This document shows, one piece after another, positions 437-63,240 of a stretch of 64,000 bases of DNA. The notes beneath the pieces are model-generated. The model saw only the letters and a program-made list of their open reading frames with translations, made no database searches and was not told the origin of the DNA. The stretch comes from Dimorphilus gyrociliatus (Eukaryota > Animalia > Annelida). A program made the position numbers and the translations under genes. Location of the stretch: assembly GCA_904063045.1 (NCBI GenBank), contig CAJFCJ010000003.1, forward strand, positions 1,302,001 through 1,366,000, in the 5' to 3' direction. The first letter of the stretch is position 1. The number at the start of each line of letters is the position of its first letter.

Positions 437-3400
437 AAAAATAATTAATGACGTAATTTTCAGGGTTGAAATAGGAGTAATTCAAGTCAATAAATAAAAT
501 TTTCTTGTTTTTTATATATTTAAAAGGATTATAAATAGACCCGAACTGATAAGTGCCTAAAAATTTTTTTTTATTGCTAACTAATCTCTTTGACAACTTA
601 TCCCTAAATATAAACGTTCTTTTATACGTTTACATAGTAAATAAGCTCAAAAACATACGTCTATAAATTTCACAAATTTACAAGTTGTTAAGCACTAATC
701 AGATCGAACAAAAGAGACGTTTTTATTAGGTTTTTTATATAATAAAAAAAAAGAGACAGATAAATAGATAGACAGACAGAGAGACAAAATGAGAGAGAAA
801 GAGTGATATGAGATAAATACTTTATAGAAAGGAAAAGATGAACAAATGAATAAAAAGGAGAAGGAAAAAAGAATGGAAAGAATAAACGACTGAATGAATA
901 GATACAGTAAATATAAAAAAATTCAATATTTTACTAGTTAAATTGAATGATCACTTCCCGTTCAAACTTCAATATTGTTATCTTGAAACTATAAAATTAT
1001 ACGTAATGTACCTTTCTATATTAATCCTACAACTTAATATAATAAGTGTAAATAAATGTTGTACTTACTATTTTAATCCCTTTCTAAATAAAGAAATAGT
1101 TTTAATCCTCGTTTCTTTTACAGATGCTTCTTCAAAATTTATATAAAAACAAAACTTTTGAAAAAAATGTAAATCAAAAATCCTCAAAAGTTATCAGTAT
1201 TATTAGTATTTTCTTGTAATTTTTTAATTTCCTTTTCCTTCTATCTTTCTCTGTTTTTATTTATCTTAATAAAAACAATTTTTCAACTTTTTTTTCTTTT
1301 TAAAAAAAAAAAGCACAAAAAATATTTTTTATTGATAATTAATGGAGATGACGTCTTCTTCTTTTCTCCCAATTGATTACTAAAGAGGCTATCTTTCTTT
1401 CTTTTTTTGTTATTCCTCTTAAACTTTTCTCGTTTCTTCCTCGTTTACCAAATAAGGAAGAGCTTTATTTGAGATGATAACAAGTATATATATATATATA
1501 TATATGTATACATATACACATATACATTTAAATGTATATATACATAAGAATTTAATTTATTTAGTTAGTTTGGTTAGTTTCTCTTCCTGTTAAATTGATG
1601 CAAAACGCTTTTGCTGACTTATTATTCTTTTAATGCCAAAATACTTAGTAGGTAGAGTTTTTTTTTAGAGAAAAATTGAGAAAATTCTGTCCATTTAACT
1701 TTCTATAATGAAAAGAAAAAAAGTTGTTTACTTCTTCAGGAGTTTATCTTCAGGCTAGTTTCCATTTCCAATTAAAGAGATAAAAGAATTATTCAAATAG
1801 TTTGACAATTAGAGAGAGCTGGAATCAACAGTCTCGTCGCCGAGAGTATAATATTAACGATTCAAAGCATTTTATCACTAACGCCCTCGCACAGGTATGA
1901 TGACTATTATCTTTGAAACTATTATACCGCCACCTATTTTATAAAATCATCTTCTACCGCTTCTACTACGTCGCCATCTAGCGCATAAAGAGATAAAATT
2001 GCTTTCCACTTCCGAATGCTCCGGCCCTATGACATGTTTGTCATTACTATTTCGCTTGTATAAGCAGTAAAGTTATAGCATAGGCTGTGTTTTTAATATA
2101 TCGCAAAAGAAACTGATACACTTAATATAAATATATTAAAATCATAGCAGAAGTAAAGTGAATAAAACAAATGAAGAAAAATAGCAAAATGCAGTCAATA
2201 AATTAAAATGAAAAAATCAATCTCCCATGCATTTCTAGTTGTCCGTCCGATATCAGAATTTTCTTCTTTTTCCAAATTTATCCTCTCTTTTTTTTATCCT
2301 CCCTACCCTTATCCTACTCCTCCATTTTTACTTCTTAAGCAAAAATTTTTACAACCGGAAAGCATTGCTTTGCCATGCGAAACGTTTGTCAGTTTTTATC
2401 TTTATAGCAGGGTAAAAGTTACGGATGAGAGAATAATTATTGCTCAATTATCGGTTTTGAGCCTAAGTATTTCTTTTTTATTCATTGGAATTTTTGCAAC
2501 AAACAGAATTTAATAATAATAATAGTTACATCATTCCATCTTTGTTTGTCACCAAAAGAAAAAGACAAACATATACAAAAATTATGCATTATCTTTTTAA
2601 AGAGTGTATTTTAAAAAACAAATGATTTTTACACTTTTTTATTATGAAATAAAGATATGGTTTCTACTGGGATGGAAAAAGAAATTAATCAAAAAATAGA
2701 GGTTAAAAGGAAGAGGAAATCGAATTCATCTTCTATAGTAAATATTTTAAAAAGTTTTTACTTATGCGGAATATATCTATATACAATATATATATATATA
2801 AAAACTTTCAATAAGAAGATTAGGAAGAAGAGCGGGGCGGAGGAGGTGGAGAAGGTATAATTGAATATAAAAACAAAAGAGGAAAAAGACCGGTAAAGCG
2901 TTCAAAAAAAAAAACTTCAATTGTTGTTAATCATTCATTTTCTTCTTCCGCTTGTTCATTCTTTTCTTGCTGTTGTGTTTTTAAAAGCTAAATTCTGTAG
3001 TCTTATTTTTTTTTCAATAAATATTTTATAACACGACTGCAATTATTTTTAAAAAAAAAAATATGTATATAAACAGTATATAGACTTAGTCTATTAATAA
3101 GTTCTTTCCTTTTTATAATATTATAGTATAGCGCATCTTATTAGACGAACAAAGAAAATTCAATTAATCGTTCGTGTTCATATTAAATTTTCTTTCTTTG
3201 CTTTGTATAATAATTTCAAATGATAGAAACAACAATGATAGGGAAAAAAGCAGATAGATAGATAAATAAATAGACGGATTGTCGGATGGAATAGAGAGAA
3301 AACAATGAGAAATGGAGTTAGAATACAGGCATATATATAGTATATACTGAAGATCCTGTTTTTATATTTTGCTTAAGCAGAGTTTAATAATGTTAAATTA

Positions 3401-3715
3401 TTATTATAAACAGTTTTTATCTCATACCGGCCTGGTCACCTAAATATAAAATAGCTACAGATTTCTATATATAAATATTGGACCATTTAATGGACAAGCT
3501 AAAGAAAAAAGGGCAATTAATGCAAAAATTTTATAGTTATTGAAGGCTTTAATCTAGTCTACCATTTGAAGAGGTCTTAAACCAATTAATAGAAGGTTCA
3601 ATACCTAAGAGACAAAGAGTGCGCTTTTAGCTTCTTTAAAGAATTTATATATTTATGTGTATACAAGCGAGAGGGAACAGAGCTATTATATACAGCATAT
3701 AAATTTATATACTGA

Positions 3716-3751
<36 letters not shown>

Positions 3752-6011
3752 AAATTAATCCATAAGTTGCTGTGTATGTGAGTAGGAAGGAGAGCTTAAT
3801 GAATTAGCTTTATAAGTAATAGTTGTATTGAAACTATAGTAAAGTGAAATTTAATTAATCTAATCCTTCTTCTATCTGAACTATAATATATTATATTGAT
3901 AATAATCTAATAAAGTTTATTCTCGGCTAAGGATTCATTAGAAACCAGGATTTATATTTGAAAGGACTATTCTGCCACCAACATCATGCTTATACTTATT
4001 GATTATCTTCTTCGCGATAATCTATATAATTCTTCATAATAATAATCTTTCGTATTTTATGAACTTTAATACATCCCCTTTATTCTTTCTCTTCTTCTTC
4101 TTCTTACTCTCTCTTTCTTTCTTCTTCCTTTCTTTCTACCCTTCTGCACCAGTATTATCTACCTTTAAACAGCATAAATCGTATAAGAGAAGCCTTTGAA
4201 AGTCCTACTGATTTAACGTTATTAACAGATATATACAGATTGGAGTTAAAAAGAGAAGATTATTTCAAAACCAATTCAAGGCTTTGTTTATGTTCTATTT
4301 TGAAAAGTAGCAAACGTAAAAAGTATCATATAGTTTGTAGTGAGGGAAATCAATTAGCTAGAAAGGATTAATTCCTTGTTTTCAATTCTGGTAGAACGAT
4401 TAACGATTTACCGTTCGTGGTATAATAAATTTTAATAGAAAAAATTCATTCAGCCTTAACGGCTTAGATTTTTACAAGAGATGAAAATCTATTCGCAAAT
4501 AAGAATCACGAAGTAAAAAAAAAAAGGGTGGGAAGAAAGGTCGAATAAAAGTATGGGGTTATAAACTATAGGGCTATAAACTATGAGGATAAAGGAACAG
4601 GATGGAGAGAAAGCCGACGGTATTGTACTACTAAAGAGTTTAAATGACTCTCGTGACGGTCATTTCATTCTTCTGGCGTCGAATTTTAGAGAAATTGATA
4701 TACTATGGTTAAATAGTATCTGTGGAACGGTTATCTCTTGTCTCATTCCTCTTTATTTTTCTTTGCACCATTCTAAATCTTCTTTTATGCCTTGGTGAAA
4801 AGACTTAAATGATTATTTATCAAACTTATTTATTTATACAATAACCCTTTTTCGCACCAATTCACATTTCTTGTAGTCTTAATGAGGAGACACTTTAGAT
4901 AGACGTATTAATATTAAAAAAGAACAGTCTCTTTAATTAAATTCCATATGATTAGCCATTAGTGAATACTTAATAAATTTTCTCTGATTAGCTGTGACTT
5001 TGCCTTGTTTTTTTGATTGTTTTTTAGTGAATTCTTAAAAGAAAAAACACCCCTTTTCTCCTTAACTCGTTTCATTGTGTAAATGATCATAGAAGGAGAA
5101 TGAAATTTGACAATTCATTACCTCTAATAAGCTATTCGATAATTAGGATACAATCTCCTTTTCTTTTTATCTGTTTTAGAAATTTTTCCCAGAAACAAAT
5201 AATCGACGTTGTAAAGCCTCAAGCGTTAGAAAGAAAAAAAAATGGAGGAACAACGCAAGTAGACCCTCGACGACCTTGAATTACGTTTTATTGCGGTTAG
5301 CTCAGCTATCTCGTGCGGTACTTCTTTAAAAAAAAATTACAGGCGTCTAGTAAAAGCGATTAGTTTTTTTTTTTAAATCTTTCCGTTAAATAACACTTCA
5401 GACGTGATGTCTGGAATAGAGGCGTCGCATCCTCATTAACAAGTTTAAAGCTTTTATTACATAGAGTTTATTCGACAAGTGAAAAATATTTTCAATTTTC
5501 ATTCTCCTCATTCTTTTTTTAATTAATAAAAAATCATATTCCTTTTAAATAAACAGAGAATTAAGCGACAAAATAACACGAATGGACTATAATAAGATTA
5601 AAATTGAATTTTGACAATTTAACAAGTTTTTAAAGAATTAATAAGAATATAGTTTATTATTAAATATTAAATATGAATCATTTATCTATCCTTTTAAGTA
5701 TTTATTATGTTTGTAGTTTGAAAAAATTAATGATCTCGGAGATTTATTTACTTTTTCAAGTACTCAAGCAGACTTAACAAACTTAAGATAGAAGAGTAAT
5801 GAATAGGAAAAATGACTCTTTTTTTCTGCTTGATTACTTTTTCAATATTCTTTACAAGAAACTATCTTCTATGACTTCATCTTTATCCTCCTATTCTCCT
5901 CTCCATTATATAATATTATTATATCGATACAGAGACAGTAGATAAGAGAAAAACATGCATATGAGAGAGATAAAAGTGAGAATATCTATTTATTAATAAA
6001 ATATGCCAAAG

Positions 6012-7692: not shown

Positions 7693-10462
7693 CTATAGAT
7701 TACTAGTCATTACCTTTCGAAAATTTCTTCTCTTTGGAGTGGAACTACACACCGTTGTTGTCTCTGAAGCCTTAACGCTAGAATAAAGTGTTCTGTTAAT
7801 AGTATGTTCCTCCAGTCCTTGCTTCCTGAAGATTTTCCTCAACTCTCTCCGAAATTGACGCCTGAAGGCGCAATAGATGATAAAATTTACAGATGAGTTT
7901 ATTGTTACTAGGATATTAGCCAGATGTGAAAAAATGTGATAAGACGAACAATCTGTAAGTGAAGTTTCTCCTTGAAGGACGTAAAGAATCTGATTGATTG
8001 CTGCAGGTGTTTGGCAGAGTAAAAATACGGCAATAATAATGATCATAACCAATGTAATATTATTCTCCTCTTGGCTGGATTTAGATGTTGAGAGTGTGGC
8101 TCTGGATCGAATTGCTGTCTTAAGCTGCCGAACGAGCATAGCATTGAAGAAGAGGAGAATAAAAAATGGCAGAAAGAAGAGAACTATAATATAAGCAACA
8201 ACCTGAAAAGTGAACATAAAATAGAAGGAATAACAATAAATTTGAGCATTTCCCTTTAATTGTTAAATTTTCACTCCTAACAGAGAAAACTCAATATCTC
8301 ATTCAAGACAATGAGAGATATAGAGCATATTTTCCTCTTACTTTTCCCCTTCAGTTCGATAGTATTGAATGAAATGATCAATAGGTAATGTCGAAAGGCG
8401 ATGTTGAAGTGAAACATATATACCATATACTGTATGTTATATATAGTATAAAAAAAAGGGAAAAAAGAGGAAAGACTCTTGTGTCAATGTCCATCATAGA
8501 GGTTTTATAAGGGAAAGTTAAGTATATACTGTTTATTTAATTTATGCATAAATTTTTTTCACATATGATGAATGGAATATATGTTTATATTCATAAGTAA
8601 ACCCGTAGTAGTTGAATAGTAGATATTCTATATGAATGGAATTTTCTTTTGCTCTCGAACCGATTCTATTTTCGAATAGATTAGATGAGTACGTTTTTTT
8701 TTAGACATTGAAAATACTTAAATATGTTCTTAACATTGAGAGTTTTTATCTGCTAAGGAATTAATTCAAAGCATGTAGAAATAAAGGAAATAGTGGAATT
8801 ATATACAGGAAAAGATTAAACTTTTCTAATGCAAGAAATGGAGCAGATTATGAAATATAGGCCTAATGCGACATATTTTAGATTTTACATAAAGAAATAA
8901 GATTTAAAAATGAATGTTAAACTCTCTTACCTTATAGGCTAATCTATATCCAGTATAGGAATCCCAGCCAACGTTATCTTCTATTTCTCTAGTACAATTC
9001 GTGGTTATGTCTGTTGAATTCTTTAACAGATACTTATTCTCAAAAAATCTTGGTATATTATAAATGGAAACTGCTGCTAAAAGGAGGAAAAGCTGAAGTT
9101 GAACCCTTTTCTTGCTGCATAGCGAATGAGCATGTAAAGGATGGCAAACCGCTATATATCGGTTTGCGGCTACAATAACTGTCATCCAATTTGTAGCAGT
9201 TTGAACGCAATGGCTAATCGGGAAGAAGAATCTGCCATGATGGGGAAAAGAACAAATATTATATAGGGTTAGCAAAAAGCAGTAAATTAGGCCTAAATAA
9301 ATTGAATTCTTTGTTAAAATGTCAGCTAAAGTCGTAAAAATGCTTTCTTTATTTAATAATCCAGAGGAAAAAACTCCACAACAGAATAATGGGAAAGGAG
9401 AGGAAAAAACAACATTTAAGTACAGAAAATTGAAAGTCAAGTCCGGTTTTTAATCTAATAACGGAATATGCTAGTCGGCTGCATTAAACGGCACGAAAAG
9501 CCGTGATTCTTCATAATCCAAGGACATTTATGAATATTCAATAAGTTTTCTTTCTTTATTCGTTTCGAAAGAGAAATTATTCAAGAAAAAGAAAAAAACA
9601 CATATGGACTTTTCATAACTTTTTCTTTTAATTCAATTTATTTTTGGAAAAGGAAAATTAATAAGAAAATAATAAAAATCGTCTTTATATAGAAATAAGA
9701 TGGTTGAGAGTCTTGATTCAAAGTATATCTATTTATATATACTGTATATATTAGTATGTAGGCTTATATATATTTCGTGTATATATTTATATATCAACCG
9801 TCTTTTTACGCTACGTTTATTGCTAAAGTTGTTGAGTATTTGGGAAATTGAAAATTTTAGCAACTTCTGCAAATCGAAAACATTTTACCCTTCAAAGCTC
9901 GCGTCACATTGAAGGCGTATGCTACTTTATATATAGATTGTATATATGATTAGTTGTTTCTGCTTAATTTTCGTTTGATGTCTATAGTAGTAACACATTT
10001 ATATACATAGTGGATTTTTGATGGATCATTTAAAAAAAGTACCAGCTAAAGAAGCTTTATTCTAGGCCCGTTGCTAATCTCTCTCTATTCAGCGTTTATA
10101 AAAGTGGTATCGGGTTAAAAAAGGAACAAACAAACTCGACGAAATGTAAAAATAACGTAATTTTACCTTGATAAAAAGGAGAAAAGATTTCCAGCATTCT
10201 CGTCCATCCAATAAAAAGACATACCCATTGCTATATGGTTGATGATGACAGTTATAAGGAAGAGATTATCAACAACAGCTAAAGCCTTAAGCAAATAATT
10301 AGCTACTCCTCTCCTTTTATGAGTATTAAGCACAACCCACGAAAGACAGTTGCCAATTAGACCAAACAAACAAATAAGACTATACGCTGGTCCATAAACG
10401 ATAAAGAAGAAGAGTCCACAACCAACCGCCTCCGTACTATTACCCGTATCGTTGCAGTTCAT
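7693..10462 (-). CDS. Rhodopsin-class (class A) neuropeptide GPCR, FMRFamide/sex-peptide-receptor-like; 3 coding exons, about 368 aa
   Basis: Exons 10462-10167, 9231-8931 and 8202-7693 are joined by GT-AG introns with matching phases (2, 0) and total 1107 nt. The protein has seven hydrophobic segments, TM1 GLIGN, TM2 LAVVD, TM3 end ANRYIAVCHPL, TM4 YNIPRFFE, TM6 FLLCQTP and TM7 NSSVNFIIY, plus N-terminal N-glycosylation sequons (NDT, NST). Confidence 0.9.
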
Positions 10463-20600: not shown

Positions 20601-23159
20601 AGCTTATTGCACACACTGTAAATAAAAGGGTAGATTCTGAAGAATTTCCTGGATTTGTCTTCGAGTTTCCGATAACGTGTAGCTACTTATTGCACACGCT
20701 ACTATAGTATTTACAAATTAATGAGAAAATTGTCCAACGAAAGTGCCGTGACAACTAAATACAATATGTGTTATAATTATGACTATTTTATCTACTACAT
20801 TCAAAATAGACTTGTAACTAATAAATACGGTAGAGTTGAAAAACAATGGGTGAAATTAGGCGAAGGCAAAATTCTATGACGGCTCTTTCAACTGCTGAAT
20901 AACTCTATTTAATTTTTGATAACCATTTATCTCATTATCTCATTATTTAGCAAAATAATCAATAAATAATATGTAATGCTCTCTTTAAAAGTTGCAAATT
21001 GACTTCCATAAGCCAATTCGTTTCTTGTTAACTTATTTATGAGAAGTAGAGAAATAATAAAACATATAGTCATGAATATTTAAAGAAAATGATATTCTTT
21101 TTTTTTAAAGGGCACTAATGAAATCATCGGATAGCCTAAATTAAGAGAAAAACACGTATAGCGTCACATATGCAGACTAGAAAAGAGAACTAGTTCATTC
21201 ATTCTTATTCTTTTTTCATTATATTTTGTTTGTGTGTTGTAAAAGGGAAAAAAATTAAAAATAAACATGAAATACATTTCTTTCTTTGTAACGTTTCGAC
21301 TAGATAAAACAGAAAGAAAATTGGAAATAGAAGTGGAAAGGGGAAAAGAAGGGAGAGTTTCGAATATTCATCATTTATTCTTCAATGGATTATCTATTTA
21401 TTATAATGGAAAAGCTGAGTTTTTTGTTTGTTTGTTTGTTTTCATTAAAGCTATCTTCTAAATGCAATGGGTAAAGTATTTAGAATATAGTATTAGGTCT
21501 TTATTTTTATCCGCTATATTTTGCAATATCATGCTTATCCAATTCATCAGCATCATCATCATCATCAGTCCTTTTCTTTCTACCCCTTCTCCCCCCTCTC
21601 TTTTCTTCGTCGCTCTCTTTCAAAAGCCCTCTTCCATGTCTTATTTATGCATGCAAGTCTTTTCCTATCTGTCTTTCTATTCTCTATTTTTTTTATACTA
21701 TAATGGCTCTATGGCGAGCTATATTTCTTTATCTACTTAGTGTCGTGTCCTAATACAATCTCACTTATAAACAAGACAATTTTTTTTCTGAACAACAATA
21801 GATGATAAACATAGCTAATTGAAAATTAATTATAACTTTACCATGAACATGAATAGGTAGAATAAATAAGGAGGCAACTATTGATAGGGGATTGATTATT
21901 TTTCCATTTTCTAAATATAAATACTGCAAACATTGGGCTCTCTATACATATATTTTAATTATCTATATACAATTTACAATATAGTAAGTAAATTATATAC
22001 TGTATACTCTTATACATATAGAGTTTAGGCTAAAGATACATATAGTGTAATTTTATAGAAATTCCTATATTACTGGTTTTATTTTTCTATATAAAAATGT
22101 AATCATAAACTTTATAATTTAATTAATTAGTTTCAGAAAGGCACTAATATAGATTTTAATATCTTAAATTGACTATTTTTTTACCTTGAGTATAGAAAAT
22201 ATTGGAGAAAAAAGAGAAAAAGAAAAGAATAAGGTGAATAAATAAATAAAGAAAAATTAAAGAAAGTAGCTTACCTCTAAAACGTTCACTACGTGAATTA
22301 CGTAGAAAGCTGTCTCGTGACAATGATCATATTTATATTGGGTCACCAATTGTACTATTCTAGCTGGAGCAAGGCATAACATAAAAACCAAAACGATGAT
22401 TATCATAACAAGAGTTATATTGTTCTCATTAGTCTCTTTTCTAGCCCTGCCTATCATCTTCTGTTTCCGTTTCTGTGCCGCTCGATAGGCCAATGTAACG
22501 TTTATATTAACATACGCCAATATTATTAAGGGCAATATAAAAGAGAATAGTTGATAAAATCCATCTGTATATATTACGCGATAGTAATAATTTGCCGTAT
22601 AGTTAGCTGGTGCCCAAGAAGCTGTTCCATTTCCAGTTTCAACTACTTTCAATTCGAAGTATCGAGGTAAATTATAGAGTATGCTGAAGGCAGTAACAAC
22701 AGCAACTTCTCTGTATACCGTAATGGGTGTATTACAATAGCGAGCCCCCAAGTATGGTTTGCAAACCGCCATGTAGCGATTCAAAGCTATAACAACAGTT
22801 AACCAAATTGTTTCTGTTTGCGCCATATAAAGTAGAGGAAATGTAAAAACTCTGGTATATAACCACGCTGGACTATTCCCAGCGCCGCCCAATGCGTATT
22901 CGATATAATAACGAATTGTATACTGCATTATCCATATACATAGGAAGGCGTTATCGGCTAAAGAGATTGTCTGCAGGAGGAATCTTGCTATCGGTGACGT
23001 ATGGTCCTTTGATAGGACGGATATCGATATAGCGTTACCGATAAAACCCAGTATGCAGAAGAATCCAAGTACAGTGTACAGACCCAATCTGAAAATTATG
23101 CAATCATGCGTATGCACTGGATCTACAGTACCATTAAATTGTCCAGTAGAATTGTTCAT
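17676..23159 (-). CDS. Second rhodopsin-class neuropeptide GPCR, FMRFamide-receptor-like; 2 coding exons, about 370 aa
   Basis: Exon 23159-22275 ends at donor GAG|GTAAGC and exon 17903-17676 starts after acceptor TATACAG; phase 0, 1113 nt total. Motifs: GFIGN, SLAD, AQTETIWLTVVIALNRYMAVCKP, YNLPRYFE, ENNITLVMIII, FMLCLAP, NNSVNFLIY. An in-frame acceptor at 23220 indicates an upstream exon. Confidence 0.9.
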
Positions 23160-26100
23160 TTTGAATAAAAATGGTTTTTCTATTCTTTTGAAATTTCCCC
23201 TATTAGCCAAATGTTTCACCTGGAATAAATTGGTTTTTTTCATGGTTAATTGATTAATTAGCCAGGTAAACTTTTGTATTATATTATAGGCAATTAATAG
23301 TTCTCTATGCCTGTATATGATAATATTCAGTATACATATGTATGTATGTATATATATATATATATATAAACACAGTACACTAGAACAGAAACTGTAACGC
23401 ACTGATAATTTATGTAATATTTAAAATTCAATATAGTTTTAATAAACTTTTCATCCGTACTCACTGACTCTTTCATCTATCCATTCATTCATTATAAAAC
23501 TCTTATACTTATTTCCAAACCTTTATTTTCTCACAGAAGAAAAGAAGTACTTAATTATCGTTCAATATCAGGAAGCTTCTTTCTCACTTTTTCCTCTTCT
23601 TTACCTTTTTAAGCTCCTGTATATCTCAACTACTTCTACTTAGGAATAATCCGGAAATTTTCTTCTATTATATTTTTTCGAATCAATAGGTTTATTATTG
23701 ATGAAAATAGCGATTAACGTACTTGAGAAATCTTTTATTCCTTAGTTCTACCGATAAGAGGCAAATTAGAGTAACGCTTTTTTTTTATAAACCAAACATC
23801 TAAAGGTAATCTTACTTCTAATTGTCAAACGGGGTATAAAGCAAAATTAAAATGCAATCTATATAAAGAGTTTCTAAAATCATATCTGCTTATAGAGTAG
23901 TGTAATTTCCTACCTTATCTTTTTGTTATGTTCATTCCAAAGTGATTTATAGCGGACACAAGACATATGCGCGTATTCGCATGCATTCCATATCTTTCCT
24001 AGATCAAATATACTTTATTTTATTTCTACTACTATACAAATATACATATATATATACAGAATATTCTTGATATATTCTTTATTTATAATGTGACCTCTAT
24101 TATGATCAGATCTAATATTTTTCAAATAAAATTCACATCTAGTCTAAATAATTAACTTTTATTTAAATTTTATAAGAAAATAAAACAAGCAAAATGAATA
24201 AGTGTCTCTGCCAATCTAAGTATTACTATAATTGAAACTAATAAAGTCGAACAATCTTTTGCAAATGAAAAGAAGAGAAAAAAAAAGGCGATGAGAAGGA
24301 CAAGAGAATAAAACAAATGTTATTTAGATTTTAGACTAAAAAATTCTAAATTAGCTGCATATTATTGATTAGATAAAAGAAAAAGTTATCCCCTTTTTTT
24401 TAACGGTGGATAATGCCATTTTCGGAACAGATAGTCAAGATAATTATAGAGAGACGCTTCCAATTGATTCTTGTCATATTCTAATAAAAATATAGTAATC
24501 ATAATAATAAGCTTTGTACTAGTAACTTGGTATTGCTATTAATATACGTAGGTTTCTATACATAAAATGCGTATTATTCACATCCTGAAAAATTAAATAT
24601 CCTTGTATTAGAGTTCATGATACAATATTTACTTAGTAGTTAACTTAATATATAAATTTGTAAATGTATGCCTTGATATATATTAATGTATATATATATA
24701 TATATATATATATATCTTCGCTTAGTCAATGACTGATTCTTATAGGGCAAAAAAAAAAAGAAAAGACATTTCTTGGAATCGTAAAATACTGTATATACAG
24801 TAATAGAGAATGAAGATTGTATTAATACATAACGAAGATGTTTTTCCTGTATCGCATTAATATCTTTTCTGTTTTTAGTAAAAAAATTTTTCCTCTGTAA
24901 AATAATTTTGTTCATAAACAAAAAGTTAATCTGTTAGAAAACATATTCCACTAATCTTTGTTATTACAATATTTTAAAATGTTAGCCTTTTTGTAATTGA
25001 TACGTAAATATATTGTTATATATTTTCTATTAATGAAAAATAGGTAGTATAACATTTAAAGTATACATAAAAAAAAAAGTAATTTCTAGTAAAGTAGTAG
25101 ACCTTCAATTGATATATTACTATTTGTTAACACTCTTGTCGAGACTTTGCAACATCGTCATTTCATTAAATGCTTTCGCTTTTAGGCCTAAATTGATACA
25201 GAAGGATTAAAAGTTTAATAAAGTTTTAGGATGCTTAAAGTTGAAGAATAAAGAGAAAATACCATTGTTTATCATCTTTATACTGTAACTTTGGCATTTC
25301 TAAAAGCATTGTCGTGGGAACCTTAAAAAATAATTTAAAGTATAGAGAGGAGAGGGAGTGGGGAGCGTCTACCGGCTGCGCATAACTAGCTAGACTTATT
25401 TCTCTTGAGCTTTAACTTCTGATGAAAAGTGTACAGATAAAAAGATAAAGATAGAAAACTCTAGGGAATTCGTTATCTTACAAAATAAAGCAAATTAAAA
25501 TAGTGTCGACATCTAAACCAAGTATCCTTTATTTGATAAAAGAAAGGGTGATGATTTAGGTCTATTTTTACGCTCTGATTGACTTCATACGATCTAATGA
25601 ATTTAGTTGAAATTAATTGTTATTTCTACAAGAAATTTCGAGGGCTGTGACACATAAAAAGGATATTATTACCTTCCTAAGTAGTATAAATAGTCTATAT
25701 ACTTGATATACATATATATATATATATATATACAGTATATCAATATGTATGCATACGTACACTGGATTATTTCATGTGCTGTATATGACATAAATGAACA
25801 TCTGTACATGCGTACTTTTTTCCATTCGAATATACGTTCTAATTTGTACATGTACATTGAATAAAAAACTGTAAAAGAATATTCTAAATATAGTACAGCC
25901 TTTTCTATAAGATAAAGAGTAAATGAATATTGCGGTGGTTGATTGCAATTTTAAGCTTCATTCGAATCATTTGCAAGATGATTGACGTCATTATTCAGAA
26001 GTTTAAAATAGCTCATTTAACGCAAGATCGACCCAGTCACTGATTCCCTCTCATAAGCAACAAGTTAGCACATCGAGGTAATGTATTGTGTACAGACACC

Positions 26101-50569: not shown

Positions 50570-53500
50570 ATGAATGATAGAACCGAAAGTTTCAATGGAA
50601 AATCCAGTTGGAAAGAATTCATTGACCATACAACCTTTCATGGAATAAGATATTTATTTATTCAGGATTCTCCATTTAGTAAAATTAGACGGTTTCGTAG
50701 AATTATTATAGTATTTATTATCTAAGCTATCAAATCCTTCAACCAAATAGATTCATCTGGATATTATTTATTATCGGAGCTAGCTTCCTCTTTGGTATGC
50801 ATTGTTATCAAAGGATATCAGAATACTTCAAGAAAGGAGCAATGACTAATTACCATATATACAATTATAACAAAATCCACTATCCAGCAATAACTTTTTG
50901 TAACAAACAAATTAAAAAGTTGAATTTTACAAGTTTTATTTCATTTCCCAAGTATAAAGTTCTGTTTTTTTCGTACAGTTCCATAATTTCCCAAGACTAT
51001 CCATTGGAGAGAGTTATAAAAATAACAGAATGGAAAAATGGTTTGTAAGAAATATCATTCAATGGAAAATATATATATATATGCACTATTTTTAGATTCA
51101 AAACAGTTTCTTGAATCGATGCTTCTCCATAATTTTGTTATATCCGTTAAAGAGAATGTAGATATGTATGATTATAGCCTTGAAAAATTTATTGTCAGGT
51201 AAATATTGGAAAAGACTAGAAAAGAAGATGGATTGCTGACTAATATTTGTTTTTTTTTGATATTTTCAAAGATGTAAATTTGATGAAAGAGACTGTAATA
51301 TTCATAAAGATTTCACTAAAACGTATACTGAATATGGTATATGCTATACATTTAACAGGGAATCATTACAAACAACAAGCAATCCAGGTATTTAATTAAG
51401 GGAAATTCTATCTTATATTGAAACATTACTTTGATATGAATTGAATTGCTTACTTTCTTATTTCTAGGCAAGGATAAAGGATTATCAATTATATTCAATA
51501 CTGATAGTTATTTGAATAAAAGTCATATCAAAAAGTCAATGGAATCTGGTATTAAAGTTTGTTTTCTTTTTAAACAAGTGATACGGTAATTCAGCTGTTA
51601 TTTACTTCCTTCAGTTCCTAATCCATAGTTCAAACTCTTTTCCTAATATTATGGAATCCGGTGAAGAAATATCAGCTGGAACATCTTTGTCCATCAAACT
51701 TACGAACACGCAAGTAATGTTAAACAGATGATAGAGGAATAGTTTAAAAGAAATTAGAGTAACTTTTACCTTTCAGTTGAAGGTTTTGCCAGAACCATAT
51801 GGACATTGTAATGAGAATAATATTCCAATGTCGAATTGCTATTTAAACTGTAAGATTGATATGTATCTAAGACATTGCAATTGTCTAGAAGAATATATGA
51901 CGACGAATTTGAATCAGATGTGTTTACTCTTTCAACAATATTTGTGTTTGAAAAGTTTGTTATCTCCCTTAATATAATAATTAATATTAAAAGAAAGCGA
52001 TAATTTCTACAGAATTGGAAAATCTTAAAAATACTACTTGTTCGTGTAAACTTCCTTGTATATATGTGAAATACGATTCGTATGCAATTTCCTCCAACAT
52101 TTTTTATTCAATCTATTCTGATACAAAATTACAATCATTTCTAAAAGAGTTATCATGGTCGGAAAAGTATAAAGAGCTTAAACGACAACTCAAAGATCTA
52201 CGAAAGACATTTAACGAAATAATAAGGGCGGTACGGGCATGGGAGAGAAATAAGAGCTTTAGAAAAGATGTTATTTTAATCCTGTTTAGAAGTAGTGTTG
52301 ACGACGTTCAACGGTTATTAACCGTTAATGCAGATATCAGAAAAGAATTAAAAACTTCTCGAATCAGTGATAAACTCTTACTACTCCAAAATCAATTATT
52401 GTTTATGAGTAATCTGAAAGATATAAATGGAAGCTTTCGAATAGATAATAGAACGGAATTGATACAAGTTTGCTTTAATCATAATAACTCAACAGATAAG
52501 AATTGTTCGCCCTCCTGCAAGATTGTAGATCCTGAATGCTTTCATGAAGACCACATGGAATTAGGAATAATAGCCCAATCTCTTGCATTTTTTGATGGTG
52601 TTTCAAATAGCTTCTGTAGCCCAGACTTGACTTTCTTCAAACAGATACCTGGCATATTGAGAAATATAAGCGAATTTATGACAGCACTCCAAGACTTTAA
52701 TCCAACTTTACTGTCTAAATATAGCAAAATGCCTATACGAGACTATTTATTTCAGTTGATCGTTATATTAACGAATAACAACTGCAACATTTTCAAACCT
52801 AGAGGAACAGATCTCCAAGCTCATGAGAATTTAAAAGTCATTCTAACACACTTTAACCAGCTTGCATTCAATCTAGATGGATGCTTGCATAGAATTTCAA
52901 TGCTGTTTTCAGAAAATATACTGGTATTATCTAGAGTGTTTGACAATTTAGAAGAAGAATTTGAAAAATCCATGAAAGTAGACTTCAACTTTGCAAGCGT
53001 TTTTTTATCTACCTCGGATTTCCTGGACCTAAGTTGTGATAACGAATTCCACTTGATACAGTACGCAATAGACAAGCTTAAAAACACTTTAAATCATTAT
53101 CTTGAAGTACATCCTACTTTTCTCTGCGATAAAAGAGGTTTTAAACTTCCTTCAATACCAACAGCACGTTTCTCTTGTTACCTATTGTAAGTATATATTA
53201 GCCAAGTATTATTATCAGAGTACTATTTCTCTTTTTGGTAGCTCACTAGGATCTCCGACGAATAGCTACAATCTTCAAGCAGACTTTAATAGGATTTTCG
53301 AAGATGCACAAAGTGCTTATTCTCTAGATGGAAAGATGTTAAGGAAGCTTAAAGAAAAGCTGTATAAAGTAAAAGAAACTATAGTAGATATCGTTGAAAA
53401 TCATAAAAAGGATGAAGCCGATGTTGAAAGAATAATACATAATAATCTAATTAAATTGAATATCTTCTATAGCGATTTGAATGTTATTAAAATAGATCAG

Positions 53501-53647
53501 AAAGTTCAATTTGATGTTTATACTCTCATTTCAGAAATTGGAGGATGTTTGGGATTGTTTCTTGGAGCATCAATTCTATCATTATGTGAATTATGTGATT
53601 ATGTGTTGTTTAAATGCTTATTACGATTAAGAAACAGAAAGAATTGA
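50570..53647 (+). CDS. DEG/ENaC (amiloride-sensitive sodium channel / ASIC-like) subunit; 10 exons, about 838 aa, with a large extracellular insertion
   Basis: Exons 50570-50691, 50751-50918, 50979-51040, 51096-51198, 51272-51387, 51468-51556, 51615-51713, 51777-51954, 52013-53186 and 53242-53647 are all GT-AG and phase-consistent, totalling 2517 nt. Family motifs: TTFHGIRY (HG motif), TM1, YPAITFCN, GICYTFN, LPEPYGHC, a Cys-rich thumb ending CSCKLPC, and TM2 ISEIGGCLGLFLGASILSLCE (GAS filter). Confidence 0.9.
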
Positions 53648-53781
53648 ATATATTGTATAAACGTATATATATATATATGCTGTATATTGATTTTGCACAT
53701 ATATTGGTGTATTATGTTAGTCTTAAAAACTGTATTCTGTATTTGCTAAATAATAAATTTGATAATTATTTAAAATTTAAA

Positions 53782-55005
53782 TTATTCCACCCATAATATG
53801 GATTCATCAATATCTGAAACTTTACTGCATCCTACCAAAGCCATAGCATTTTTTAACTCTTTACTTAATATTTCGATTAGTTTTTCTACGCCTTCTTCAC
53901 CCTGAAAAAGAATAATTTTGTTGTTAATGAAAGAGCTTTTGTCTATAATTAACATCTAATTACATCGTATGCCAAAGCACTAAGTACAGGTCGACCAAAG
54001 AAAACGCAATTTGCACCAAGAGCAAGGCCCTTTAATATATCTGTCCCTTTCGAAAATCCTCCATCGACGTACAATTCAACCCCTTTACCTTTCAGGACAG
54101 GCGCAATTCTTCTAAGACTTTCAATAGTTGAAGGACCGTCACCTAATTGTCGTCCTCCGTGATTAGAAACCCAAACAGCATCTACTCCAGCTTCAACAGC
54201 TGCTAGAGCATCCTCTGGTTTACAGATTCCTTTAGCAAGGATCTTTAGTTTTGTCAGCTTCTTTAATCTACGAATATCATCCCAAGTTTGACAATATGAA
54301 TCAACTTCAGAAGCATCCTTGCTCGTATCCTTCATTAATTCAGACAAAATACCTTTAGGAAAATTTGGCATTGGCCAATGAACTGTGCTGTTGTCTTCCT
54401 CTATCGCTTTGTCAAAACTTCTATTACCGTGAACCGCATGATCCAGAGTAATAGCAATTGCATGAAAGCCAGATTTTTCCAATCTTTTAATGATTTCCTC
54501 GTTCATAGAATCTTTTGAATAGACGTTCATTTGCATAATTTTCAGACAATTTTTCTCACGAACTGATTTGCCGACTTGTTCGATGGAGGTTTCGGCGTAA
54601 GAACTTAAACCGAAAGGAATATTATTATCTGAAGCAGCTCTAGCAGCCTGAATCTCTCCGTAATCATTTATCCATGCTCTGCACATAGTTGGAGAGAAAC
54701 CGAATGGCATACCAATTTTATGGCCCAAAATCTCAGTTTCCAGACACCTCTCCTCTAAATTAGCGCATACTTTTGGCATCAAGAGAATTCTATACAAAAT
54801 AGAAAAAACGATTTTAGATAATAGTTTAAAAGAAGAAAGAAAAGAAGGTGTACTTCTCAATGTCCGTCTTGTTCCTTTCTACGCATTGATGCTGATCAGC
54901 TCCACCGTAGATGTATTTTATGAGTTTGTCTGATAAATTTGTTTTCCCAAGTCGTTCAATATCTTTGTATGAAAAGACAATATTTTCAGTTTCTACGGTA
55001 TTCAT
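53782..55005 (-). CDS. FMN-dependent alpha-hydroxyacid oxidase (HAO/glycolate oxidase family), divergent; 3 exons, about 365 aa
   Basis: Exons 55005-54854, 54789-53964 and 53901-53782 are phase-consistent, 1098 nt total. Motifs: YGGA, PFGFSPT, AITLD, TWDDI, KGI, VSNHGGRQL, VDGG, GTDILKGLALGA, GRP and C-terminal GEEGVEKLIEIL..EL..AMALVGC. Confidence 0.9.
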
Positions 55006-55569
55006 TTGGCTGCTATTAGGTTTATCACTCGCTGAGTACAAGCTCTAAACTGAAGGTTATTCTGCTTTTATGGAAGTCATCCCAGTGCATGTGTATTACC
55101 CTCATGTTGTAGCATATGTTAATGATAAGAATCTATGATGATCCTCTCTCCTCTTTCCCCTTCACTCCACGTATACTTTATAGTTTAGTGCAACATATTT
55201 CATATAACATTAATTATAATTCGAAGCTTCATATAAATAGAATGCACACATGTACCAAAAAGACAAAGTGGCTAATTATTATGGCACAAAATATCTGTAT
55301 TCATTCTATTAATAAAACAACAAGAAAGCGAATATCGTTTTGTTTATGCTGAGAGTATAAACTCTCATTAAGTGTTTAAACAGAAGGAATGCTTTTCTTT
55401 TGTTGAATGGTAATTACGTGTCATCTTTGTCTGCTGATGAAATAATTAGGTGCGTCTAATTATTAGGTTAACAAGGTAAGCACCAGAAGAGCCATCTATA
55501 CTTTTTATCTGTCAATAATAAGAAATAAAGAGGATATTTGCTTTTGGTAATATAATACTAAGAATATAA

Positions 55570-61628: not shown

Positions 61629-63240
61629 ATGCGTTTCATTCTCAGGTTGTTCTTATTATGCATTCTTATGTCTTTGATGTCACTATTTTATCTCTTAAAC
61701 TTCCAAACGTCCACATTGAATCAGAATTTCTTAAGACCTTACGATTACGAGCAAATAATAGCTGAAAAAGAGGCTCGTATAAGGGAGCTAGAATACGAAT
61801 TGAATGACTTAAAGGAAAATAAAACCTCAAGGTCTAAAAGTTCTGAAATTGAAGATCTAATAACCAAAGTCCACTCGAGGTGGCGGAATGGATCTCTTTC
61901 TGGAGGCGGTTTAAAATTCCATAACGAATTTGAGATGAGTGCCTTTGCCAGATTCACATTGAATAGAATATATTTAATAGAACCCGGTCTGGGGAAGAGG
62001 GTGGTGGAAAAACCTATTGCGTTCAAGAAAAAAGATATCTTAGAAGTCGTATCAGGAGCCTGTAAAATTCTCAATAAAAAAAGAATGTCATCGGTAAAAC
62101 TCATGGAATAGACTAGCCAACATTAATTTATACAAAATTTAACAAAATCGTAGACCCTTTGTCTATCCAAGAGTTTTATCAGGGAAAAGAAAAAAGTCTT
62201 TATACAGATAAAATATTTTTAGAAGGTATTGTCAAGAATGAACCTTCTATTGGTGCCGTTTATGAACTATATTTTAGAAATCTTGAGTTTCCTACTGACA
62301 GGAATAAGTTTGTGCGAGTAACTTTATCCAGACCTTTTGCACCAGTTTATGGCTTGGGATACGCTCCAATTAATATTAATAATAAACTGCTTTTGGTAAT
62401 TTTACCACTATCCTATGAACGATTGGATAAATTTAAATCTTTTTTGGATCGTTTCCAAATGCTTGCTCTTGAAGATACAAAATTAGCGTTCACACTAGTC
62501 TATTTCGGAGAGAAAGGTAGCTTGGAGGCAAAATCTATGCTAAATAAGCTAAGGCAAAATCAGATCACAGCTAAATTTATCCACTTGAAAGAAACATTTT
62601 CTAGAGGGAGAGGATTACAAGCTGGTGTAGACGATTGGCAAAATGAAGATGTTATATTATTCTTTTGTGATGTTGATGTAATTTTTAATGCTGAGTTCTT
62701 ACAACGCTGCAGACTTAATGTTGAAAAGGGAAAACGTGTTTATTATCCCATGGTATTCTCGCTCTATAATCCTAAAGTAGTATACACTATGCACGGTTAT
62801 CATATCCCTAAGGAAGATAAACAGTTGGTTATTTCTAAAGATACTGGTTTTTGGAGGGATTTTGGATATGGAATGACGTGTCAGTATAAATCAGATTTCG
62901 AGAGTATTAGGGGTTTGTATTTCAGCTATATAGTAAACTATTTAATAACCAGTATAAATTTACAGGATTTGACCAAAAAGTATCCGGTTGGGGAAAAGAA
63001 GACGTATTGTTATTTAAAAAGTACGTTAAGTCTTCCTATGTTGTTTTGAGATCTCCTGATCAGGGAATTTTTCACCTTTGGCATCCAAAAGAATGCGACG
63101 GAAATCTTCCAATTGACCAATATAGATCATGCCTAAGTTCACGAGCTTTGAACGAAGCTTCGCACAGGCAACTAGGCATGTTAGCCTTCAAGGACGAGAT
63201 CAAAGTTCGTGAAAAATTGAAAGAGAATTCGAAGAGCTAA
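61629..63240 (+). CDS. CSGALNACT: Chondroitin sulfate N-acetylgalactosaminyltransferase (type II membrane glycosyltransferase); 3 coding exons, about 489 aa
   Basis: Exons 61629-62093, 62183-62912 and 62966-63240, 1470 nt total. N-terminal signal anchor and coiled-coil stem, then FSRGRGL, FFCDVD (DxD), VYYPMVFSLYNP, TGFWRDFGYGMTCQYKSDF, GWGKED, FHLWHPKEC and NEASHRQLGML, all recognisable CSGALNACT1/2 motifs. The first intron boundary is less certain than the second. Confidence 0.9.

Follow-up and report, generated by a model that had tools for sequence, protein, structure and literature searches.

A DEG/ENaC channel gene of Dimorphilus gyrociliatus with a large, predicted helical domain inserted at the extracellular knuckle

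Analysis of a 64,000-nt stretch of AT-rich animal DNA (26-35% G+C), corresponding to C3:1302001-1366000 of Dimorphilus gyrociliatus and referred to below as the window, showed a gene at 50570-53647 on the forward strand that is predicted to encode an intact DEG/ENaC channel subunit of 858 codons. A large domain with no family match sits at the knuckle of this otherwise complete subunit. The best explanation of the results as a whole, held with moderate confidence, is an intact DEG/ENaC gene with an extracellular helical crown of about 405 residues that would couple an outside partner to gating.

The channel core and the inserted domain

The gene has the DEG/ENaC layout, in which two membrane helices surround a large cysteine-rich extracellular domain and a His-Gly motif precedes the first helix. 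All searches, folds and trees of the channel gene were run on single exons. Exon 9 (53242-53647), the last exon, matched Pfam ASC (PF00858) at profile positions 396-455 with 65.4 bits (E 6.8e-18; cut-off 23.6), and weaker matches in the correct order were obtained for exons 2 and 7. Residues 61-123 of exon 9 aligned to residues 396-458 of chicken ASIC1 (E 1e-10) and also to human ASIC2, with E values of 1e-10 to 1e-11. The selectivity filter G/S-x-S was present, with LFLGASIL aligning to LFIGASIL of ASIC1, and the second membrane helix gave an exon-9 hydropathy peak of 1.83. The His-Gly motif, the first membrane helix, the YPAITFCN and GICYTFN blocks and the thumb cysteines (exons 7 and 8) were also found. 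The core, the G-A-S filter and the thumb-end cysteine motif are common to the channel gene, chicken ASIC1 (PDB 6AVE and 2QTS) and human ASIC2 (6L6P). ASIC2 and ASIC1 were the best solved-structure matches over the part from beta11 to the second membrane helix, an exon-wise result that does not decide the subfamily.

As read from the sequence, the gene contains nine exons with a coding length of 2577 nt (858 codons and a stop). The eight introns, each bounded by GT-AG and 55-80 nt long, have phases that are consistent across the nine exons. The median intron of D. gyrociliatus is 66 nt (PMC7854359), and the closeness of the eight introns to this value was counted in favour of the gene model.

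The interval between strands beta10 and beta11 comprises about 430 residues, namely the rest of exon 8 (52096-53186, 363 residues) together with 66 codons at the start of exon 9 (53242-53440), after which beta11 (NNLIKLNIFY) begins. The same interval in chicken ASIC1 has about 25 residues, in line with the few tens of residues that a preliminary description of this DNA, made from the sequence alone, had given for the knuckle interval of ASIC and ENaC. The last thumb cysteine and beta11 are about 442 residues apart here and about 37 apart in ASIC1; therefore about 405 residues are extra, which agrees with the insert of roughly 400 amino acids that had been placed at the knuckle, between the end of the thumb and the strand before the second membrane helix. 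Most of the insert lies, as had been described, in one exon of 1174 nt (exon 8, 52013-53186; acceptor cag at 52010-12, donor gtaagt at 53187). The upstream exons, given earlier as 62-178 nt, measured 89-290 nt. A 391-codon open frame would be expected by chance at this base composition with a probability of about 7e-15 per start.

The count of ten cysteines in the insert was reproduced, and seven N-glycosylation sequons were found, all of these cysteines and sequons lying in the exon 8 part. The maximum hydropathy of the insert was 1.16, with no membrane-like stretch, and its placement between the two membrane helices makes it extracellular. The exon 9 part of the insert contains the best heptad-like helix (residues 29-40), aligns from 53330 onward to the sister protein P0004 described below, and probably includes the original knuckle helix just before beta11.

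No match to the insert was found in Pfam, NCBIfam, the PDB sequence profiles or the ESM Atlas, so that its earlier designation as novel was borne out in these family and structure libraries. When 1.84 billion representative proteins were scanned in full with HMMER, one relative of exon 8 was obtained, P0001 (E 5.8e-31), and this is also the sole relative of the exon 8 part of the insert. P0001 is an exon-sized open reading frame (ORF) of 379 residues from a Logan assembly of public reads and is collinear with exon 8 over residues 1-376. Because its start, with the thumb-end motif, and its end both correspond to those of exon 8, it is taken as the same exon in another organism. A reciprocal search of the D. 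gyrociliatus genome with P0001 matched exon 8 only, making the two reciprocal best hits. Identity between them was 27-29% overall and 23-33% across the insert, and reached 52% over the thumb end, encoded by the first 27 codons of exon 8 (52013-52095), where the last thumb cysteines (CSCKLPC) and strand beta10 (YAISS) form a motif common to 14 sister genes.

All 13 cysteine columns of exon 8 and P0001 coincide, including all ten in the insert, while two of the eight sequons are common to both. That ten of ten insert cysteines coincide at 27-29% identity is the strongest argument that the insert is translated and under selection. The kept cysteines fit a disulfide-braced fold, and it is probably this fold, with five disulfides, that selection maintains. 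A word search with a two-sequence profile of exon 8 and P0001 gave nothing beyond P0001, and one with residues 1-70 of exon 9 gave no relatives. Searches of the D. gyrociliatus genome with the insert and with P0001 matched exon 8 only, so no paralog or donor gene of the insert was seen. An internal duplication in the insert was considered and rejected: tblastn of an inner motif against the segment of P0004 before beta11 gave E 0.7, and Smith-Waterman comparison against shuffles gave nothing.

AlphaFold2 (AF2) modelling gave mean confidence (pLDDT) values of 36 from the single sequence and 38 from the two-sequence alignment, and both runs produced mostly helices. Values of 52-72 were reached only by exon-8 residues ~21-130, which were modelled from the two-sequence alignment as an up-down four-helix bundle (segment 52072-52428, residues ~20-138). 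A VIA-align fold search with the bundle gave best Z scores of 8-10.7, with single-chain ROP, chemoreceptor sensor bundles and a talin rod domain among the matches. The cysteine cluster that follows, at exon-8 residues 153-201 (52471-52617; Cys 153, 164, 168, 175 and 201), has clustered sequons and was modelled at low confidence as a coil or hairpin loop. An antiparallel coiled-coil stalk carrying a globular domain had been proposed for the insert. This was not borne out, because only the bundle residues fold, the cysteine cluster was modelled as a loop and the remainder is predicted to be helical, with no separate head. As for the heptad-like helices described at the two ends of the insert, the best heptad windows by a crude score do lie there, but 9% and 4% of shuffles score equally. 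We infer that the insert is mostly alpha-helical and disulfide-braced, with an N-terminal part resembling a four-helix bundle, a cysteine-rich glycosylated loop and further helices.

Sister genes with inserts at the same site

The D. gyrociliatus genome (77.9 Mb) contained at least 108 Pfam ASC matches. In at least 18 loci the ASC match breaks at position ~391 and resumes at ~396-400, 1.3-2.8 kb further on, and the insertion site of the channel gene (ASC ~391/396, after beta10) is the same as in these loci. Twenty insert-type sister loci were examined in detail, and 14 of them contained one open frame of 740-860 residues, with about 500 residues after the thumb-end motif that had no Pfam match. 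Going by these sequences, the knuckle insert is a family trait of the sister genes and not a peculiarity of the channel gene in the window.

The sister inserts resemble the one described here in their insertion site, in having no Pfam match and in being extracellular; they differ in length, with 490-500 residues compared with about 405. They fall into two sequence types, a and b. Type a was found in about 15 genes on C20, C116, C118, C41, C78 and others, has six conserved cysteines and is partly tandem on C20 and C116, with four genes in a row on C20. Type b was found in two genes, at C3:308-314 kb and on C19, and has few conserved cysteines. The C19 gene (DgyrCDS12248, P0004) has an annotated protein of 953 residues that includes the insert and equals the open frame on C19 except for an intron read-through at the edge. 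The position of the final intron differs, being directly before beta11 in type a and 66 codons further upstream in the channel gene.

Homology between the insert and the sister inserts was tried and rejected at the level of sequence. A phmmer search matched the thumb motif only, a profile of 14 sister inserts gave E 1, and hhalign gave a probability of 0.2% for the insert against type a and against type b, and likewise for type a against type b. In cysteine register, two of six columns matched between the insert and the sister inserts, equal to shuffles. With ten conserved cysteines, compared with six in type a and few in type b, the insert represents, as far as its sequence tells, a third and more cysteine-rich insert family.

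The nearest channel cores by summed exon-wise scores all belonged to insert-bearing loci. A tree of 64 columns from beta11 to the second membrane helix placed the channel gene next to the type-a clade as its sister, moderately supported (86/78), and did not resolve the placement of type b. Two readings of the origin of the inserts remain, one old insertion that diverged beyond recognition or repeated domain capture at a permissive site.

A word search with the type-b insert, restricted to candidates sharing words, matched Dimorphilus-like proteins only. Two Logan proteins of type b, P0002 and P0003, had 89% and 84% identity to the D. gyrociliatus pair L048 and P0004, and therefore a close relative or a divergent strain had been sequenced. 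No ortholog of exon 8 at about 85% identity turned up in those read assemblies, only P0001 at the identity given above. One sister locus on the reverse strand, L032 (C116:34000-41000; locus 1726-5967), contained a frame of 1414 residues with about 1150 after the thumb-end motif, about twice the usual insert; several further frames, on both strands, can be read through this stretch without a stop, and it may therefore be repetitive.

Exons of the channel gene and neighbouring genes

The exons not yet described all lie, like the rest of the gene, on the forward strand. The coding part of exon 1 (50570-50691) contains the ATG, the cytoplasmic N-terminus and the His-Gly gating motif (TTFHGI); sister P0004 aligns to it by tblastn, and its donor is GTTTCG at 50692. 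Exon 2 (50751-51040) contains the first membrane helix and the extracellular start YPAITFCN, matches Pfam ASC positions 39-85 (E 1.5e-4) and aligns by tblastn to sister genes. Exon 3 (51096-51198) covers the finger region and has weak similarity to L048; in reading frame and GT-AG sites it agrees with the exons on either side. The conserved CKFDERDC ... GICYTFN block is found in exon 4 (51272-51387), which aligned by tblastn to more than 20 sister loci with 40-70% identity.

Exons 5 (51468-51556; beta-ball and palm strands, GLSIIF ...) and 6 (51615-51713; palm strands, FLIHSS ...) aligned by tblastn to sister loci, the latter to P0004, L048 and L049. Exon 7 (51777-51954) encodes the cysteine-rich thumb, aligns by tblastn to sister loci and matches Pfam ASC positions 295-335 with E 0.04, below the cut-off. 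Intron 8 (53187-53241) is 55 nt long (GTAAGT ... TAG, phase 2), and its retention would lead to an in-frame stop. The channel part of exon 9 (53441-53647) contains beta11, beta12, the second membrane helix with the G-A-S filter, a short C-terminus and the stop codon TGA. About 105 nt past this stop, an AATAAA at 53752-53757 was noted by eye as a plausible polyadenylation signal.

Other genes were found in the window. A convergent gene for a flavin mononucleotide (FMN)-dependent 2-hydroxyacid (glycolate) oxidase-like protein lies at 53949-55041 on the reverse strand, about 300 nt past the channel stop (Pfam FMN_dh, E 7.7e-76). Two rhodopsin-type G protein-coupled receptor genes, both with Pfam 7tm_1 matches, lie on the reverse strand at 7693-9440 and 22257-23402, and the first of them also matches Srw-like chemoreceptors. 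A chondroitin N-acetylgalactosaminyltransferase-like gene was found at 61629-63049 on the forward strand (Pfam CHGN, E 3.3e-46); the ORF at 61629-62111, just upstream and with no Pfam match, may be its N-terminal exon.

Possible functions of the insert

Under the preferred reading, three copies of the insert would crown the trimeric channel, with one glycosylated, disulfide-braced helical crown per subunit. The crown would attach to an external partner such as matrix, glycocalyx or a large ligand, and movement would be passed on, by the helix that leads into beta11, to the palm and the beta11-beta12 linker, which control opening. In ASIC structures, the upper domain is coupled to the gate through beta11, beta12 and the linker between them. 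With the insert ending in a helix that would lead directly into beta11, a partner on the crown would be well placed to bias gating.

The palm and knuckle N-glycans of alpha-ENaC are needed for its responses to shear force and have been proposed as matrix tethers (Knoepp et al. 2020, PMC6955349), and the tether model of MEC-4 has been reviewed (PMC10148893). On the strength of these two reports, the crown is preferably read as a tether or docking arm built into the subunit; taken on its own, this proposal is a tentative one. The alpha-ENaC knuckle N-glycan is similar to the insert as a glycosylated outer contact point, and differs in being a single glycan on a short knuckle, compared with a 400-residue domain with seven sequons. 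The MEC-4/MEC-10 degenerin complex with the matrix proteins MEC-1, MEC-5 and MEC-9 is a DEG/ENaC system thought to be gated through extracellular attachment (PMC10148893). Its partners are separate proteins with no sequence relation to the insert, whereas the extra mass here is part of the channel subunit. A literature search found no paper describing a domain inserted at the DEG/ENaC knuckle, and the D. gyrociliatus genome paper notes only a canonical ENaC repertoire (PMC7854359).

Several points weigh against the preferred reading. The roughly two dozen fast-diverging paralogs, some of them tandem, resemble a chemoreceptor-style expansion more than a conserved tether. The structure model is poor, with 290 of 390 residues below a pLDDT of 50 in addition to the low means; the fold matches are generic, their Z scores of up to 10.7 lying within the stated noise level of the tool for helical bundles; and the heptad signal is weak. 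Transcript or annotation support was not found, exon 8 being missing from the NCBI proteome of the species in the searched collection.

This last point also bears on whether the insert is part of a working protein at all. The gene could be silent or decaying, or the insert could be spliced out to leave a channel of normal size; a donor-like GTATGC at 52080-52085, noted by eye, has the same phase as the donor at 53187 and could in principle be spliced in frame to the acceptor at 53241. Such a splice would, however, cut strand beta10. None of the nine exons is interrupted, their splice sites are canonical, every core motif is intact, the 391-codon frame is far beyond chance, and the full-length collinearity of P0001 with its ten cysteines shows selection on a translated insert. 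In the sister gene DgyrCDS12248, moreover, the insert is present in the annotated protein. Absence of the insert from the working protein is accordingly considered improbable.

The chemoreceptor-like expansion is what would be expected if the bundle bound a peptide, protein or small molecule and the sister inserts formed a receptor repertoire. At least 18 insert-bearing genes, including the four in a row on C20, and three insert types diverged beyond recognition are consistent with such a ligand sensor, and peptide gating is known in the family (FaNaC, HyNaC). The N-terminal bundle model also superposes on bacterial four-helix sensor domains (McpZ, Z 10.0; McpS, 9.6; TorS, 8.4), but these matches too fall within the noise range of the tool. 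The known peptide pockets of FaNaC and HyNaC are in the finger, thumb and palm and not in an added domain, and no ligand is known, which leaves a sensory role rather unlikely. Less probable than either of these is a part for the insert in assembly, in which the helices of three subunits would pack as a crown and choose trimer partners among more than 100 DEG/ENaC paralogs. With at least 108 ASC matches in the genome, the sorting of subunits is a genuine difficulty, the three insert types are not related to one another, and the best heptad-like helices are at both ends of the insert, near the region of the three-fold axis. The heptad signal is not significant, though; the ten conserved cysteines, like the dense glycosylation, suggest a monomeric domain that is folded and exposed; and DEG/ENaC trimers normally assemble through their cores.

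Beyond the single gene, D. gyrociliatus and the source of P0001 could possess a "crowned" class of DEG/ENaC channels in which a helical knuckle domain serves as a gating tether or ligand sensor. The insert described here, with five putative disulfides, would be the third crown family of this class, either captured independently or diverged from one ancient insertion. We put this forward as a possible view that falls short of a probable one.

How DEG/ENaC channels are coupled to outside force or large ligands is a long-standing open question. The candidate coupling element here lies inside the subunit, at the knuckle and directly upstream of the gating strands, so that a single construct, compared in forms that contain or lack the insert, would be enough to test the question. 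Should the insert prove to be unexpressed or without effect on gating, it would be a lineage-specific oddity only. The presence of three mutually unrecognisable inserts at one site in about twenty paralogs bears on how domains enter ion channels, whether through a permissive hot-spot or through one old, fast-diverging insertion.

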